This document shows, in pieces, positions 15,790 through 23,268 of a stretch of 64,000 nucleotides of DNA. The notes beneath the pieces are model-generated. The model had not been told where the DNA came from. It did no database searches and saw only the letters and a program-made list of their open reading frames with translations. The DNA comes from Paraphysomonas bandaiensis. Its lineage: Eukaryota; Protista; Chrysophyceae. The DNA is taken from contig CBFFRP010000281.1 in assembly GCA_965644295.1 (NCBI GenBank), positions 372,001 through 436,000 on the forward strand. The letters are read 5' to 3'. Position 1 is the first letter of the stretch. The number at the start of each line of letters is the position of its first letter. The translations under genes and the position numbers were made by a program.

Positions 15790-18700
15790 TTACTCCAACG
15801 ATGGAAAACTCTGACCTAAGAAGTTTAAACTGCACCCTTGCCAACGTGTTCTTAAGACCTTTTGACAATACACAGTTAATATTAATTTACGCTTTTAGTT
15901 AGTGCAATATTGACTGATTGATATTATAGGAGATATAGTAAGTTTATGATGTTGTAGCCCTGTGAGTTAGGAACCACGTCATTTACCAACATCAACATTC
16001 TGTTCTACAAATCATATCTTTAACAGCTACTATATTTTCAGTTTCTTTGTATACTTGTAATAGCTACTCCTATACTGTAGTCATGTATATTCTGTATTTC
16101 ATTGCTACATAGAATACAGGATAACTACTAGCGATTGACTTTACCAAACTTCAAGTACGCACGTAGGAGTTGGTTGTAGTTCAATACTCCCACTCAATGA
16201 ACATATCAGAATATACTGTGATGAGCAAGTCTACTTAGTGCGATACCATAGTGTGCACATGCTGATAGTGCAGCTTCTCGGACAAGGCTTTAGTCATCAC
16301 GTCTGCTGTCATCTCTGCCGTTGGCACATGATTCAGCCTGACGATACAGCCTCCCACTTGCTCTCGAATCCAATGATACTTGATCCGAATATGCTTGGAA
16401 CGTTTATGATTTACCGGGTTCTGAGCTAGATCAATCGCACTCTTGCTGTCCATATTCAAGATTGTTGGAGACGCATTCTTACTGAGCTCAAATCCACGAA
16501 TTCCGAGCTCTGTCATCACCCCTCGTATCCATACAATCTCCTGAATTGCAGCATATGCAGCCATATATTCAGCTTCCATAGTCGACGTAGCCACTGTTGG
16601 CTGCAGTCTGGACTGCCATGCAATTGGAGCACCCCACAGATATACGATATACCCTGTAGTGGATCTGCATGTATCCAGATCTCCGGCCCAATCTGCATCA
16701 GAGTACACACATAGAGGGTCTTCATCTGTGAAATTAGGAAATATGATACCTTGATCAACTGTATTTTCTAAATACAATAAAGTATGCAGAGCAGCTTGAC
16801 ATGCAGCGTACGTGGGTCTTGTGGTGAACCGGGAGAGAAGATTTACTGTATATGCCATGTCTGGTCTAGTATGCACTGCCAAATACATTAAGGCACCAAT
16901 AACAGATTGATAGGGAAATGCATCAACGTATTCTCTCTGTTTTCGAGTTTCTTCCTCTTTTGCATCCTTGGACAACTTTAGGCCAGGTGGTAGAGGTGTG
17001 GTTGCCTTGCACCGTCTCTTCTTTTCTGACAACAAGTGATTGAATCTGGCCACAACATCTTTAGCATATGCAGACTGATGTAACTTAATCTGGCCATTAT
17101 GACGCTCAATGGTAAGACCTAAATAATGCTTAAGGTCCCCCATATCTTGCATGGCATATTGAGTCTTAAAGGCGCTGATGACTTCTTCAATATGACGGCT
17201 GTCAGAGCTGAGCACAATGATATCATCTACATACACAAGTATCATATGTAGGTTATCATCAGTACCCTTGAGTACAAATAAACATGGGTCAAGAACACAT
17301 TGTTTATACCCCATCGCCTTTATACTGTCCTTCAGCATTGAATGCCAATTTCGAGGCGCTTGTTTTAGGCCATACAAACTCTTCAGAATCTTCAAACAAC
17401 AGCCTTGTGGAATATCTATTCCTGCAGGTGGAGACATAAACACGTCTTCGTCCAGATCTGCATACGGAAATGCCGTTTCTACATCGAGTTGACGGAGTTG
17501 CAGATTGTATCGCAGAGCCAGTGCTAGTGCTAGCCTAAATGATACACCTTTAGCTACTGGGGAGAATGTCTCATTATAGTCGACTCCTTGTTCTTGAGTA
17601 AACCCTTTCGCCACAAGTCGAACTTTGAACTTCTTAATTTTTCCAAGATGGTCGCGCTTTACTTTAAAGACCAATTTAGATTTTATGATTTTTCGGTGTT
17701 TCGGCCTTCGGACAATCTTCCAGCATGTCCTTCGTTCAAGCTTGTGCACCTCCTTCCTGGTAGCTTCAATCCAGTATGTTCTCTGTGGAGTCTTCTTTGC
17801 TTCTGCCAGCGTCTGTGGCTCTTTAATTGTGCTGTTGGAGGAATCAAGAAACAATGAGACATCGCCGAGGACACCAACGTTAACAATGTGCCGTTTTTTT
17901 CGAGGTCGTTTTTCAGTTCTGGGATTTCGATCTGCCCCACCTGTTGAAGATGCGCCCCGATTTGAGCGGTCAGGAGTCCTCTGTTCATTGTCACTGTCAT
18001 TACAAGTCTGATCCAACTCATTTCGCAAACTATTAAACTTGTCGGTCTGACACTTTGTAGAGTGAGTCATCTTTACTACATCTTTGATATGAATTGGAGT
18101 TTGCTCCTCGGTAGTATTTCCTTTCATATCTAATCTCCTATATGCAACAATGACTCCTCTTCTCTCTATCACTCTGGTGGTAACATAACACAGGTGTCCA
18201 TCAAGATGTCTGAGGCCCACCAGGTACTGATAGTCATTTACACTCTCTGCTGTTTCTGAGGTGTCGATTTGTAGATTATCTATTTCGTCGAAATACTCCT
18301 GTGAACGCTCTGGAATTGACTCATCAAACTGTGCATTGACTGCAACAATAATAGCATTCAGGTCTGGAATATATATTTGGTGTCCAACAGGTTGTTGACA
18401 TTGTCCCATATAGTATCCAGGTTTTCCCTTTTCTTTCCACTCTTTGCGGCGCTGCTCCTTCGGCACAATAGCCCATGCCTTGCAGCCCCAGATCTTCAAG
18501 TCACTCACATCTGGTGCGGTTCCAGTAATATACTCAAAAGGTGAGATGTATCCTTTCGTTGTCTTCGTAGGTAACCTGTTGATCAGATATACAGCATGCA
18601 AGACTGCTTTGAACCAAAATACTGATGGCATGCCACTATCGAGCAATATAGCAAGGGCCATCTCCTTCACTGTACGATTAGTGCGTTCCGATAGCGAATT

Positions 18701-21700
18701 CATTTCGGGTGTGTCACGTGGAGTCCAAGTAACCTGTACAGTCCTTGTGCTGGTGGTTTCACGTAAGTACTGCCTGACATGTTGCCCTACTAGTTCTCCT
18801 GCGCCATCTGCATGATATCGTCGTAGTTGCAATCCTTCTTTGACAAGTTGGGTCTCTACCATGTCCTTCATACACTTTAACACTTCACTCCCAGTCTTGT
18901 TTTTCAACCCATAAGCCCATACATGTTTTGCATCACTGTGCTTGAATAGTAACACATGTTTGTAGCCTTCCATCGATGGCGTGTTTAGGACTTCCATCGT
19001 ATCTGCACTGAGCACCCCTCTCTCCTTTGGGTTGTTGTCTAAGTTCATCAACTGGCGTGGAGTCCTGAAGTTCTTTCTCGTGAGTTTCGATCGCATGCAG
19101 GTATTACATTTGCATATCGTTTTTTTGTGTTTTTTTCTGAAATATTTCTTGTCCAGATTTATTCCATCAACTAGGCCTCGGCGGTCGGACTCAGTCAGTT
19201 TATCATAGTTGACATGGCCAAGTCTTTTGTGCCATAGAATTCGCTGGTCATCAAACCCCTGCTCCTCAAGTGCTGCTGAGGATTCTTCTCCAAGCTGAAG
19301 TAAGTCTTCGAGTCGAACTGGATATAATCCATTAACACTTCTCTGTCTAATGAGTGTCTTGTTCGTAGTCTTATTTCGAATGACGACTTCATCATTATCG
19401 AACGTCACAACACAACCCCTATCTGTGATGCTCTTCATATCTACGAGGTTCTTACTTGCTTCAGGTGCGTAGTACACCTTTTTAAAGCTTCCTACATCGC
19501 CAACACTGTGTATTGACAGTTTACCTTTGTTCGCTGTGGACATCTGCCTATCAGCGCGCTGAAGGTTGGTCATGTGGTTTTTGGAGGTAAGGATCATCTT
19601 GTTGCACCCGCTGTCTAAATAAATAACATCTGACATGCTCTGTGCTAGATTCACCTCTTCTTCCACACATATCATCGATTCGTATCCCGCTTCATCTTCT
19701 GAATCATGTACAGACACTCGCGGTTTCTTCTTGTTCTTGTAGGGTGCCGTTTCCCTTCTAGAGTCTCGCCCCCGTTTAGAACTGACCACTGCAGCTTTAG
19801 CAGTCTTCAAGTGGAAGCAGTCTTTAGTCTGATGGCCTGGGATGTCACATATCTCACACACAGGTAGCTTTGTTTTGTTATCACCCCTGTTTCTGTGATC
19901 TCTATCTTTTCTCTGTGATCTTGTCCCCTTCATCCTCTTTATGACATGCTCTGGAGTCTTGCACTCCCTAGCAAAGTGGCCAAGTTTCTTGCACTTATTG
20001 CATCTGCCCTTTCTCTTGTGCTCTTTCCATTTACTGTCATCCACTGCTTGATTGACACTGTCTTCCCCTGAATTTTGCAACGCATGCTTGCCGAATGATG
20101 TGTTTTCATACCCTTTGATTAGGCTGCTTGCTCTTGCGTATGTCACATCGTTTGCTGTATACAGGCTGTGTGCTAGTTGGGAATATCTCTTGTCTGTGAG
20201 ACCTTCCTTTAGTCGAGTGAGCTTGTCGTCTTCCGTGACTTCACGACCTAGATTCTCGAGAATCTTGGCCTGGGCTTCAACGCTGTCGACGAACTCTGCT
20301 CCTGACTGACTTGAGGTAATCTTCATTGAATTGAACTTTGTGACCTCTGCCTGTACTGTATTCTTTTCAACATTGAGAAATCTCTCTTCCAGTGCCTGTA
20401 GTAACCCTTTTGCTGTACTTCCTTCGTAGAGAGCCGCTGTTGTGCCTGCTTTTGGGTGAGCATTGCACACTTCCATCAGGAAGGAGTACGCGGTCTCGTT
20501 CCGGGTGTTCCAGAGTTTCTTCGCTTTGCGTAGTCGCTTCTTCTGTGCATCAGTCATATGAGCTCCCGCTGGGACTGTAGAGTCTAGATCATGAATGTGC
20601 CTTGGTTTATCCTTTGAGAGGACAAGATGAGCTCGATTGTGTCTCATGAGGAATGAGGTGAAGAACTTCTTGAATTTCTTGAAGTTCAGTTCCTCGAAGG
20701 GAGGTACCTTTGAGCCTGAGGCGACATTCGTGAAATTTCCATCCGCTGCCATATTAATTTACGCTTTTAGTTAGTGCAATATTGACTGATTGATATTATA
20801 GGAGATATAGTAAGTTTATGATGTTGTAGCCCTGTGAGTTAGGAACCACGTCATTTACCAACATCAACATTCTGTTCTACAAATCATATCTTTAACAGCT
20901 ACTATATTTTCAGTTTCTTTGTATACTTGTAATAGCTACTCCTATACTGTAGTCATGTATATTCTGTATTTCATTGCTACATAGAATACAGGATAACTAC
21001 TAGCGATTGACTTTACCAAACTTCAAGTACGCACGTAGGAGTTGGTTGTAGTTCAATAGTTAATACCAAAACACGATGTACTCATACGGTTACCTCCTCC
21101 ATAGGGCATATATTTGATGCTACTAAGGACTCCTCCGCAGTAAATCCGATTGCCTGACCAATTGAATTCACTGCAGATCTATACCATTGATAAGACGTGA
21201 TCGCAAGCATCGAGTGAAACAGCATCAGATACCATACCTTCTATACAATATAAATTTACAAAGACTTTTAGTATTCCCGACTCCTTGAAAACCATTATAG
21301 TGATAAAGAACAAAACTCTCATCATCCTTCCCGGCCACACTATATAGTCAGAAGCAGATAAGAGCACATTGAAGAAAGTTAATGCTGATACCTGTCGCTG
21401 CGATGTCGTGTACTTCGCATTGCAGGGTTTGGAGAGGTTTCACCTGATAATATATCAGCTTAGACACAAACACCATAAAACAACTTACTCTGATTACTTA
21501 AATCTGCTACTATATCTGAGTTCCATTCTTCCTGCATCTGTCGGGCAATTTCAGAATCTGAACGAGGACGCCCTGGTGAGGCAGAGTTAGGAGTTGCTTC
21601 AGCAAGGCTATTAAATCCAGCTTGTATCTCTCGCGCAACATCACTATCACTTCGATGACGAGAATGATTCGAATTCTTAGGAGACAAAAGCTCATCCAGG

Positions 21701-23268
21701 GTGGTTCCCGTCATGAGTTGGGATATATTCTCCCAGAAAGTGCTCCAGATAATGATGCCACCATCTAGCTGCAGGAATGAACTAAGCCTAAAGCACAACC
21801 GAATAAGATATCGAAATCGCATAGCACTCGCATAGAGTGTTACCTCGCAACCGCATCCTTGTCGTTAGCTAGTGGAATCTCAAGACTTGACAGTATTTCG
21901 CCAAGACGTTGCTCCATAATGAACCCGCATCCGTCGATATCGACTGCCTTGAAGGCACGCTGCACACGCGCCAATATCTCCTCTTCTCTAGATTCCTCAT
22001 TCAGTCGCCTGTCATTTGCACATAGCTAAAATAAAACGAAACGGAGACACACACTCCAACACTTATGGATATAACAACGTACTTATCTAGAGAGAATAAA
22101 ACTGAAAAGTGGGACGAACTCCCAATCACCCACACTGGGAACTCAGGAGTCTTGTAGTAGCTTCCCACCTGTAGTCCAAATTGTTACTTCATTTTAGATA
22201 ACCATTGTAATATATATTACTTGGCAGTATCTCAAGGCTTCTAGGTGCGATAGATACCCGACTTGAGGACGATGTGGTACACCCTTTAGAACGAGCGACT
22301 CGCCATCAGAGGAAGTAGATCCCTGGAAAGGGAGGTCACCGTCAAAAACATAAGTAGATGCCCTTCCTATAAGAAGGAGGTTGATTAACTCCTGAGTACA
22401 GTGCCCATACTGTCCGATCACTACGCAGCATGCGTACAGTAAGTTGTGCAATAAGAACCAGGGTTGCTACTTACACGACGTTTCGCTATCGTCCATATCA
22501 TCTCTGATAACTGAAGCCCCGCTAGAATGATGCAAACACGATTCATAAAGCAGATCAAAAAGTATACTATTCTTAAATTCTCACCGGGTTAGTATCAGTG
22601 ACAGAAGAAACAAAAAACAGCCACACTCAGAGCGGTATTGCGGCATTAACTTGTTGAAAAGTTCATGAAACATGACTTCACTGTAACACTCGTGTACAAC
22701 AAGTTTCGAGCAGGAAGGAATATCAAAAATCGACTCATTAGCTGGGTCGACCTAAAAGATAATTATAGAAAGCAAACTGTGACCACTTGTTGGTTACCAT
22801 ATATACTGCGTCGTCAGTTTTACATCGATGTAGGATATTCCATGCTGCCGTCACAAAGCTGTGTTTTATAGCATTAGGGTCAACTGACATAATGTTAGCG
22901 TCAGTAATGTTATTATCACTGCAAAAAAGTAGATCTTTCATAATTTCTGCCTGCATTGCAGCCAAAATTCCACATGGTCCACCATGACCTTGCATCAATC
23001 CAAAGTTTGGACTATCAGCAAACTGAAATCCCTGAGAGAACCATCTCTTCATATCATCCGGTTCAAAACTAGTTCCAATTGCTGTTTTTATAATACTCTC
23101 CATATTTCCTGTACCAATGAGTGTAATAGGACTGCATACACGTTCTTTTTTTACTAATGGACGATCCACTGCACTGATGTGAGAGGTATGGATGCTACTA
23201 TCATTGTTCGATATATCATCATCAAATGCACGTATACGTGCTTCACGCATTTTATCTTGTTCATTCAT
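15790..23268 (-). CDS. MINDY-3/4 family (DUF4205) deubiquitinase; last intron interrupted by a Copia element
   Basis: Catalytic [43 protein letters not shown] and [15 protein letters not shown]. It has an EF-hand-like segment and two UIM/MIU-like repeats ([24 protein letters not shown]). The terminal exon 15858-15790 reads [15 protein letters not shown]... Confidence 0.85.
15880..16186 (-). repeat. 3' LTR of the Copia element
   Basis: Direct repeat of 20752-21058 with no difference seen by eye. Termini TATT...AATA. Confidence 0.95.
16235..20752 (-). CDS. Copia Gag-Pol polyprotein, 1505 aa, uninterrupted
   Basis: Two CX2CX4HX4C knuckles, protease YLDSGC, integrase WHKRLGH..CNTC plus [30 protein letters not shown], RNase H YSDADWAG. 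Confidence 0.97.
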   Translation of the reverse strand: MAADGNFTNVASGSKVPPFEELNFKKFKKFFTSFLMRHNRAHLVLSKDKPRHIHDLDSTVPAGAHMTDAQKKRLRKAKKLWNTRNETAYSFLMEVCNAHPKAGTTAALYEGSTAKGLLQALEERFLNVEKNTVQAEVTKFNSMKITSSQSGAEFVDSVEAQAKILENLGREVTEDDKLTRLKEGLTDKRYSQLAHSLYTANDVTYARASSLIKGYENTSFGKHALQNSGEDSVNQAVDDSKWKEHKRKGRCNKCKKLGHFARECKTPEHVIKRMKGTRSQRKDRDHRNRGDNKTKLPVCEICDIPGHQTKDCFHLKTAKAAVVSSKRGRDSRRETAPYKNKKKPRVSVHDSEDEAGYESMICVEEEVNLAQSMSDVIYLDSGCNKMILTSKNHMTNLQRADRQMSTANKGKLSIHSVGDVGSFKKVYYAPEASKNLVDMKSITDRGCVVTFDNDEVVIRNKTTNKTLIRQRSVNGLYPVRLEDLLQLGEESSAALEEQGFDDQRILWHKRLGHVNYDKLTESDRRGLVDGINLDKKYFRKKHKKTICKCNTCMRSKLTRKNFRTPRQLMNLDNNPKERGVLSADTMEVLNTPSMEGYKHVLLFKHSDAKHVWAYGLKNKTGSEVLKCMKDMVETQLVKEGLQLRRYHADGAGELVGQHVRQYLRETTSTRTVQVTWTPRDTPEMNSLSERTNRTVKEMALAILLDSGMPSVFWFKAVLHAVYLINRLPTKTTKGYISPFEYITGTAPDVSDLKIWGCKAWAIVPKEQRRKEWKEKGKPGYYMGQCQQPVGHQIYIPDLNAIIVAVNAQFDESIPERSQEYFDEIDNLQIDTSETAESVNDYQYLVGLRHLDGHLCYVTTRVIERRGVIVAYRRLDMKGNTTEEQTPIHIKDVVKMTHSTKCQTDKFNSLRNELDQTCNDSDNEQRTPDRSNRGASSTGGADRNPRTEKRPRKKRHIVNVGVLGDVSLFLDSSNSTIKEPQTLAEAKKTPQRTYWIEATRKEVHKLERRTCWKIVRRPKHRKIIKSKLVFKVKRDHLGKIKKFKVRLVAKGFTQEQGVDYNETFSPVAKGVSFRLALALALRYNLQLRQLDVETAFPYADLDEDVFMSPPAGIDIPQGCCLKILKSLYGLKQAPRNWHSMLKDSIKAMGYKQCVLDPCLFVLKGTDDNLHMILVYVDDIIVLSSDSRHIEEVISAFKTQYAMQDMGDLKHYLGLTIERHNGQIKLHQSAYAKDVVARFNHLLSEKKRRCKATTPLPPGLKLSKDAKEEETRKQREYVDAFPYQSVIGALMYLAVHTRPDMAYTVNLLSRFTTRPTYAACQAALHTLLYLENTVDQGIIFPNFTDEDPLCVYSDADWAGDLDTCRSTTGYIVYLWGAPIAWQSRLQPTVATSTMEAEYMAAYAAIQEIVWIRGVMTELGIRGFELSKNASPTILNMDSKSAIDLAQNPVNHKRSKHIRIKYHWIREQVGGCIVRLNHVPTAEMTADVMTKALSEKLHYQHVHTMVSH
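20752..21058 (-). repeat. 5' LTR of the Copia element
   Basis: Direct repeat of 15880-16186. Its last base on the minus strand is the A of the gag ATG. Confidence 0.95.

Follow-up and report, generated by a model that had tools for sequence, protein, structure and literature searches.

Introduction

Several long terminal repeat (LTR) retrotransposons of compact genomes occupy niches in which insertion is harmless: Ty1 and Ty3 are found at RNA polymerase III (Pol III) genes, Ty5 in Sir4 heterochromatin, and Tf1 at RNA polymerase II (Pol II) promoters, and the Dictyostelium elements DGLT-A and Skipper belong to the same group. The present work concerns a Ty1/copia element that lies in the last intron of a MINDY-3/4-type deubiquitinase gene (hereafter MINDY) of the chrysophyte Paraphysomonas bandaiensis. 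The DNA analysed, called the window throughout, is the whole 64,000-nt stretch from positions 372,001 to 436,000 of contig CBFFRP010000281.1 (C281), one of 669 contigs of a 62.6-Mb assembly (GCA_965644295.1). The family to which this element belongs occupies AT-rich gene 3′ ends between convergent genes and shows no sequence or intron specificity; the copy in the window is very probably an ordinary, very recent insertion of an active family, made without any choice of the branch motif into which it fell.

In target-specific LTR elements the determinant lies in the C-terminal region of the integrase, and a candidate module of the window element lies likewise. The niche differs, being gene 3′ ends between convergent genes, which to our knowledge has not been described for any LTR element; the targeting itself is putative here. 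Ty1, Ty3 and DGLT-A differ further in that the present family shows no pattern of Pol III genes within about 1 kb, and no chromodomain was found in its polyprotein.

By its features, rather than by phylogeny, the element is likened to the CoDi elements of diatoms, which are Ty1/copia elements of the Pseudoviridae (Maumus et al. 2009, PMC2806351). LTRs, a 5-bp duplication and recent bursts are common to both, as is a single polyprotein of gag, protease, integrase, reverse transcriptase and RNase H (gag-PR-IN-RT-RH) with a CCHC knuckle and a reverse transcriptase of the RVT_2 type; they differ in the gag start codon, which straddles the boundary between LTR and putative primer-binding site in the present element. 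TG/CA termini are missing from a few CoDi families too, and insertions of these elements were found outside genes; the Copia insertions of Phaeodactylum tricornutum are in addition heterozygous (PMC2806351).

Two further systems bear on the locus. Bacterial insertion sequences are likewise over-represented in convergent spacers and avoid spacers that contain promoters (Plague 2010, PMC2942039); they are, however, prokaryotic DNA transposons, and their pattern has been ascribed to selection, not targeting (PMC2942039). Introner elements and other spliced-out transposons share with this locus a transposon within an intron and a target duplication that forms part of a splice signal. Introners are short, non-autonomous elements that give rise to many introns and either bring along or create both splice sites, whereas the window element is 5.2 kb long and autonomous, represents the one intronic copy among 22, and is only putatively spliced out.

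The interrupted intron of the MINDY gene

The insertion in the window is an intact Ty1/copia LTR retrotransposon (Table 1); its two 307-bp LTRs are 100% identical, and the 5-bp duplication flanking it is perfect (GTTAA on the plus strand; TTAAC on the strand shared by element and gene). When the element and one copy of the duplication are removed, a 51-nt GT-AG intron (35 + 16 nt; GTAACC...GGTATTAAC TGTGTATTGTCAAAAG) is restored, which joins ...CPMEE to VLRTRWQGC...LE*, the C-terminus conserved among MINDY-3-like homologues; the element lengthens this intron to 51 + 5179 + 5 = 5,235 nt. An earlier reading of the same DNA, made from its letters alone (the sequence-only reading), had given these coordinates, the identical LTRs, the target-site duplication, the sense orientation and the 51-nt intron, all of which hold in every detail on sequence checks. 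The expansion from 51 to 5235 nt among short introns that it described was likewise confirmed, the ten MINDY introns being 46, 63, 54, 52, 74, 56, 45, 52, 59 and 51 nt long (range 45-74 nt, median 53).

The identity of the host gene rests on exon matches to PF13898 and to the PDB MINDY-3 chain 9rmd_A (E = 6e-6); the gene contains a MINDY-3/4 catalytic domain, which has the GGPCG cysteine motif, and the C-terminal tail LRTRW-GC...PS(I/L)(D/E) that is conserved in this type. Searched without a profile against 1.8 billion representative proteins, exon 1 found 400 relatives, the closest just 35-46% identical, and the full-length relatives (585-657 amino acids, aa) share the conserved tail. By tblastn the homologue tail maps to window positions 15858-15793, followed by a stop, and the residues preceding it map to 21180-21094 (...SNICPMEE); these are thus neighbouring exons of a single gene, and the terminal exon VLRTRW...* that had been proposed after ...CPMEE is real, being colinear with the C-termini of full-length homologues. 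A PDB search with the 22-aa terminal exon alone returned only chance zinc-finger matches, the query being too short. Intron boundaries were placed by homology, and continuity of the frame was taken from exon-length arithmetic and exon-by-exon alignment; exons 1-11 total 1,743 nt, or 580 aa, which is in frame by arithmetic. De novo intron finding in the window, in which open frames were joined across GT-AG, gave no signal above a TG-GA control. The insertion point lies 85 nt before the MINDY stop codon, within the last 4% of the gene; its exons and catalytic motifs are all undamaged, in keeping with a recent event.

Exon 7 of the gene (21444-21787, minus strand) carries R(S/H)RSDS(D/E)(V/I)AR..Q twice, between an EF-hand-like insert and the C-terminal part; the repeated motif also occurs in distant homologues (RSDSDIARELQ) and constitutes a conserved short linear motif.

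No strong branch consensus is seen in the ten MINDY introns; most of them have a loose yTnAy at a distance of 8-25 nt from the acceptor. The last intron has TTAAC as its sole motif of the yTnAy type. This motif ends 16 nt before the exon, its A being 17 nt from the 3′ end of the intron, and is, to judge by its sequence and position, a reasonable branch-site candidate that the insertion splits. The LTR end ...TTAATA followed by TTAAC places TATTAAC again upstream of the acceptor. The sequence-only reading had regarded this as a branch motif rebuilt by the element, and the sequence TATTAAC is indeed present; its regeneration, however, is a trivial result of target-site duplication and no property of the element. 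Any 5-bp duplication preserves the target intact on both sides of the insertion, and the TTAAC nearer the acceptor thereby keeps its 16-nt spacing automatically, and the coincidental part of TATTAAC is just the 2-nt TA at the LTR end.

The element family and its target duplications

The assembly yielded 289 LTR candidates at first look; a 25-nt pattern from the LTR end has at least 104 exact matches, with about 40 pairs at exactly 4,872-bp spacing, and the family thus defined comprises at least 104 LTRs and about 40 full-length copies. Both flanks were obtained for 22 copies, including the one in the window; several further copies were represented by a single flank or were damaged. Every complete copy has a perfect 5-bp duplication and internally identical LTRs; substitutions relative to the window copy have a median of 3 per 5,179 nt, and the full frame is kept in 15 of 18 copies. 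The burst of the family is very recent.

The 24 duplications that were read comprise 22 distinct 5-mers, and TTAAC occurs in the window copy only. The others are GAGTT, TGTGG, AAAAA (twice), TATAT, AATAC, ATAGG, CATTT (twice), GATTG, TGTTT, GATAA, TATTG, AAATG, TTATA, GCTTT, CATAC, AAAGT, CTAAA, GTTAG, GTTGC, ATATT and, from a solo LTR, GACCG; they have an AT-rich centre and are otherwise unrelated.

Three observations on individual sites and copies are recorded here. In the aligned sites an A directly follows the duplication on the 3′ side of the element in 15 of 22 cases, and a C stands two positions before the duplication in 10 of 22; these preferences amount to a weak, non-palindromic target bias of uncertain meaning. 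In the copy at C343:1-2515, near a contig end, the 3′ LTR is directly followed by 18 nt of its own 5′ end in inverted form, which points either to a rearrangement or to an insertion of the nested or head-to-head kind. The copy at C41:345122-352620 has a matching duplication (ATATT), an LTR spacing of 7,194 bp and foreign sequence beside its 5′ LTR; about 2.3 kb was probably inserted into it.

Genomic context of the insertion sites

For each copy the empty site was rebuilt, and stop-free frames around it were mapped and scored by codon usage. None of the 22 sites falls in a long open reading frame (ORF), compared with 31-38% of control positions (p = 2e-5 to 3e-4), and a single site, that of the window copy, lies in a recognisable gene. 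Relative to the direction of the element, the ORFs closest to a site are plus-strand on the upstream side and minus-strand on the downstream side, so that the neighbouring genes converge on the insertion. Pfam matches identify the upstream flanking genes as NOG1, a TPR protein (weak), ankyrin, Mlf1IP, ribosomal L2, TBP, Band_7, a RING protein and MINDY, and those downstream as VIT, Pyr_redox_dim, ADH, CXXC_Zn-b, RCC1, Metallophos, FG-GAP, thioredoxin, Sel1 and Nucleotid_trans. Of the flanking genes that Pfam confirms, 19 are directed toward the site and none away from it (sign test, p = 4e-6); among ten ORFs that point away, none has a Pfam match. At several sites the stop codons of genes with complete C-terminal domains lie 85, 89, 176, 369 and 385 nt from the insertion, and the mapped sites include no insertion in a tandem or divergent spacer. 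The convergent-spacer pattern is real and statistically strong.

Base composition contributes a second bias. Within 100 nt of the sites GC content drops from 0.40 to 0.32, compared with 0.37-0.38 for intergenic DNA and a range of 0.36-0.39 among the intergenic classes of the control window; divergent and convergent spacers are on average equally AT-rich in that control, and the orientation bias is thus separate from the AT bias. The flanks of the sites are mostly unique DNA. The window copy conforms to this niche insofar as the next ORFs downstream are on the opposite strand, although neither has a Pfam match. The safe-haven strategy suggested by the sequence-only reading survives in part: the family has a niche, but this consists of gene 3′ ends between convergent genes and not of introns.

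Targeting of Pol III genes was considered and rejected, as the sites show no association with tRNA or other Pol III genes: ARAGORN detected no tRNA in 30 loci, and in 15 loci Rfam detected a single one, 1.5 kb from one site.

Other repeats were met at some of these loci. A solo LTR of a second LTR-retrotransposon family (C90:36627-36924) was met 66 nt from a Copia site. A first look gave about 454 candidates for this second family, whose pairs are about 5,161 bp apart, and one Copia copy lies inside such an LTR. An abundant repeat of about 310 bp (C288:127649-127956) is present 12 nt from one insertion site and close to two more. It has 833 first-look candidates, its copies are 90-98% alike, and it contains an internal 39-nt palindrome; it may be either a miniature inverted-repeat transposable element (MITE) or a solo LTR. 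Downstream of the C90 site, at a distance of about 1.6-2.4 kb, there is a long tandem array (period 4-8 nt), which matches short arrays at two other loci.

Structure of the element

Table 1. Coordinates of the retrotransposon and of the MINDY gene that it interrupts (window positions).
Feature	Position	Strand	Evidence or remark
Complete Ty1/copia LTR retrotransposon, 5,179 bp	15880..21058	-	host-gene orientation; identical LTR pair, 5-bp duplication, single gag-pol frame
5′ LTR, 307 bp	20752..21058	-	final base is the A of the gag ATG
3′ LTR, 307 bp	15880..16186	-	identical to 5′ LTR
gag-pol frame, 1,505 aa	16235..20752	-	Pfam domains
Putative primer-binding site, TGGCAGCGGATGG	20739..20751	-	immediately 3′ of 5′ LTR
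Polypurine tract, GAGTGGGAG	16187..16195	-	abuts 3′ LTR; unchanged in all copies
Target-site duplication TTAAC, upstream copy (gene direction)	21059..21063	-	
Target-site duplication TTAAC, downstream copy	15875..15879	-	best branch-site candidate of restored intron
MINDY-3/4-type deubiquitinase, exons 1-10	21094..23268	-	PF13898 exon matches, homologue alignments, intron boundaries
Penultimate MINDY exon (exon 10), ending ...CPMEE	21094..21178	-	local tblastn, homologue P0047 residues 541-569
Last intron, 5′ part, donor GTAACC	21064..21093	-	
Last intron, 3′ part, TGTGTATTGTCAAAAG, acceptor AG at 15860-15859	15859..15874	-	
Terminal MINDY exon (exon 11), 22 codons and stop	15790..15858	-	aligns to last 22-24 residues of homologues P0056, P0011, P0041 and P0047
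Predicted cryptic acceptor, first AG after upstream TTAAC	21021..21022	-	inside 5′ LTR

The 1,505-aa frame has Pfam matches to gag (70-202), zf-CCHC (250-265) and gag_pre-integrs (476-556), and further to an SH3-like integrase domain (743-814) and RVT_2 (1010-1238); the domains stand in Copia order, and the reverse transcriptase is of the copia type. Neither the rve core nor RNase H was reported by Pfam on the polyprotein at the thresholds used. The LTR termini are TATTG...TAATA; TG...CA termini are usual for Ty1/copia elements, though not obligatory. The gag ATG consists of the last LTR base and the first two bases of TGGCAGCGGATGG. No tRNA complementary to this putative primer-binding site was found in the DNA searched; a self-priming site of the Tf1 kind was ruled out, since the LTR contains no complement of 8 nt or more of TGGCAGCGGATGG. 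The poly(A) signals AATAAA and ATTAAA are absent from the LTR, which is little informative for a protist.

Between the SH3-like integrase domain and the reverse transcriptase there is a module of about 60 residues (polyprotein aa 837-895; window 18068-18244, minus strand). Four β-strands are predicted for it by single-sequence AlphaFold (pLDDT 55); it has no Pfam match, and a Foldseek search against the PDB gave nothing below E = 0.2.

Origin of the insertion and of the niche

On the preferred account of an ordinary insertion, the 5-bp staggered cut of the integrase happened to span TTAAC, repair duplicated this sequence on either side of the element, and the window copy is the member of the family that fell just inside a gene rather than past a gene end. 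Several points weigh against this account and against the niche on which it draws. Genes were called from open frames and Pfam matches, and small-exon genes could hide intronic insertions; the 3′ half of MINDY itself consists of small exons and is of the type that open-frame calling could miss. The control is a single 59-kb region of the window. The sample covers 22-26 of about 50 copies, leaving out about 17 full-length copies and about 20 single LTRs. The GTTAG duplication on contig C259 reads CTAAC on the strand of the neighbouring gene and so adds a further branch-like 5-mer; the expectation among the 23 other duplications is about 0.2. Lastly, what is said below on the fate of the MINDY transcript is read from sequence.

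Whether the niche reflects a preference of the integrase or purifying selection is about evenly balanced. With selection, integration would be random or merely AT-biased, and purifying selection would clear those in exons, introns, promoters and tandem spacers and leave only the insertions in promoter-less convergent spacers; this explanation is given slightly less than an even chance. It is favoured by the equal convergent-spacer excess of bacterial insertion sequences, which is ascribed to selection (PMC2942039), by the cloned Copia insertion sites of Phaeodactylum tricornutum, all of which are outside genes (PMC2806351), and by the solo LTR of another family and the abundant 310-bp repeat at or beside several sites. 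Selection alone does not explain the extra AT-richness of the sites, nor why the 3′-proximal parts of tandem spacers are wholly without insertions; if the host is diploid, recessive insertions would not be purged quickly, and the MINDY insertion has been retained even though it is itself probably damaging.

The integrase may instead be tethered to, or prefer, the AT-rich, nucleosome-poor terminator DNA at gene 3′ ends, with the MINDY copy as an overshoot; this is a serious possibility, given somewhat less than an even chance. The 19:0 orientation, with no insertion in tandem or divergent spacers, argues for it, as does the greater AT-richness of the sites than of any intergenic class, a bias separate from orientation. 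The copies are nearly identical and young, and the sole genic copy lies at the extreme 3′ end of its gene. Targeting determinants of Ty1 and Ty5 are located in the region after the SH3-like integrase domain, and the predicted β-strand module at aa 837-895, which follows that domain, would be the candidate determinant here. Set against this are the low pLDDT of 55 and the lack of a significant Foldseek match for the module; the other repeat families at the same spots, which fit generally permissive DNA; and the identical LTRs, which at an assumed mutation rate allow up to about 1 million generations of selection. The fuller proposal that the integrase actively directs the family to AT-rich Pol II gene terminators, that aa 837-895 may be the determinant and that the MINDY copy overshot is offered tentatively, as more doubtful than not.

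The sequence-only reading had proposed that the element targets introns or branch sites and is spliced out of them, which would give it a safe haven in a compact genome; this is now very improbable. The window copy is sense-oriented in an intron, its duplication is the best branch-site candidate, TATTAAC is restored, and one other duplication is the CTAAC noted above. The comparison of duplications and contexts across the other copies nevertheless came out against targeting: the 23 other duplications are heterogeneous and do not include TTAAC, no other mapped site is in a recognisable gene, and several sites lie 85-385 nt past the stop codons of genes with complete C-terminal Pfam domains. The element has no evident splice-site design, and an intron of 5.2 kb is about 100 times the local norm.

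An assembly artefact, in which repeat-containing reads were mis-joined and the element misplaced in the gene, can be practically discounted: about 50 near-identical copies are a classic source of mis-assembly, but the 5-bp duplication is perfect, and both flanks are unique and rejoin into a homology-validated intron/exon junction.

Fate of the MINDY transcript

Correct splicing over 5,235 nt is probably inefficient, because introns here are 45-74 nt long. It is considered more likely that transcripts end in the sense-oriented 5′ LTR or that the normal donor joins the first AG of the LTR. The upstream TTAAC is also kept, and the first AG that follows it (21022-21021) lies 38 nt into the LTR; use of this predicted cryptic acceptor could give a 73-nt intron, inside the local size range, and a protein ending in ...CPMEE-FGKVNR*. 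If the 5′ part of the intron is retained, the frame stops after VTV (...CPMEE-VTV*). Either termination in the LTR or use of the cryptic acceptor would entail loss of the 22-residue tail that is conserved across distant homologues, and the insertion is probably damaging to MINDY.

The insertion could nonetheless be tolerated, as it is recent and possibly heterozygous, and a second gene of the MINDY-3/4 family is present on contig C25 (C25:60866-61657, a stop-free open frame of 542 aa), which is a possible backup for the interrupted gene. The sequence-only reading had suggested a search for an empty-site allele; neither such an allele nor a DNA paralogue occurs in the assembly, where each flank is found once. 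Its two remaining alternatives, a lucky insertion and truncation of the deubiquitinase, both stand, truncation being if anything the likelier.

Significance

Branch-site targeting by a retrotransposon that hides in introns would be a remarkable finding, but the evidence speaks against it, and the window copy is an ordinary recent insertion. The interest lies in the pattern of the family, which has about 50 near-identical copies: all those examined outside the gene are in AT-rich DNA shortly beyond the ends of convergent genes. The MINDY locus is a ready-made test of how a short-intron organism handles a 100-fold intron expansion. If the niche is due to selection, the family would be a clean eukaryotic counterpart of the pattern seen in bacterial insertion sequences. 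If integrase targeting is true, gene 3′ ends would be a new kind of safe haven beside those of yeasts and Dictyostelium, and the family would provide a natural, still active system for understanding how retroelements recognise the ends of transcription units; were the overshoot also true, the MINDY copy would mark how near to coding sequence this targeting operates.

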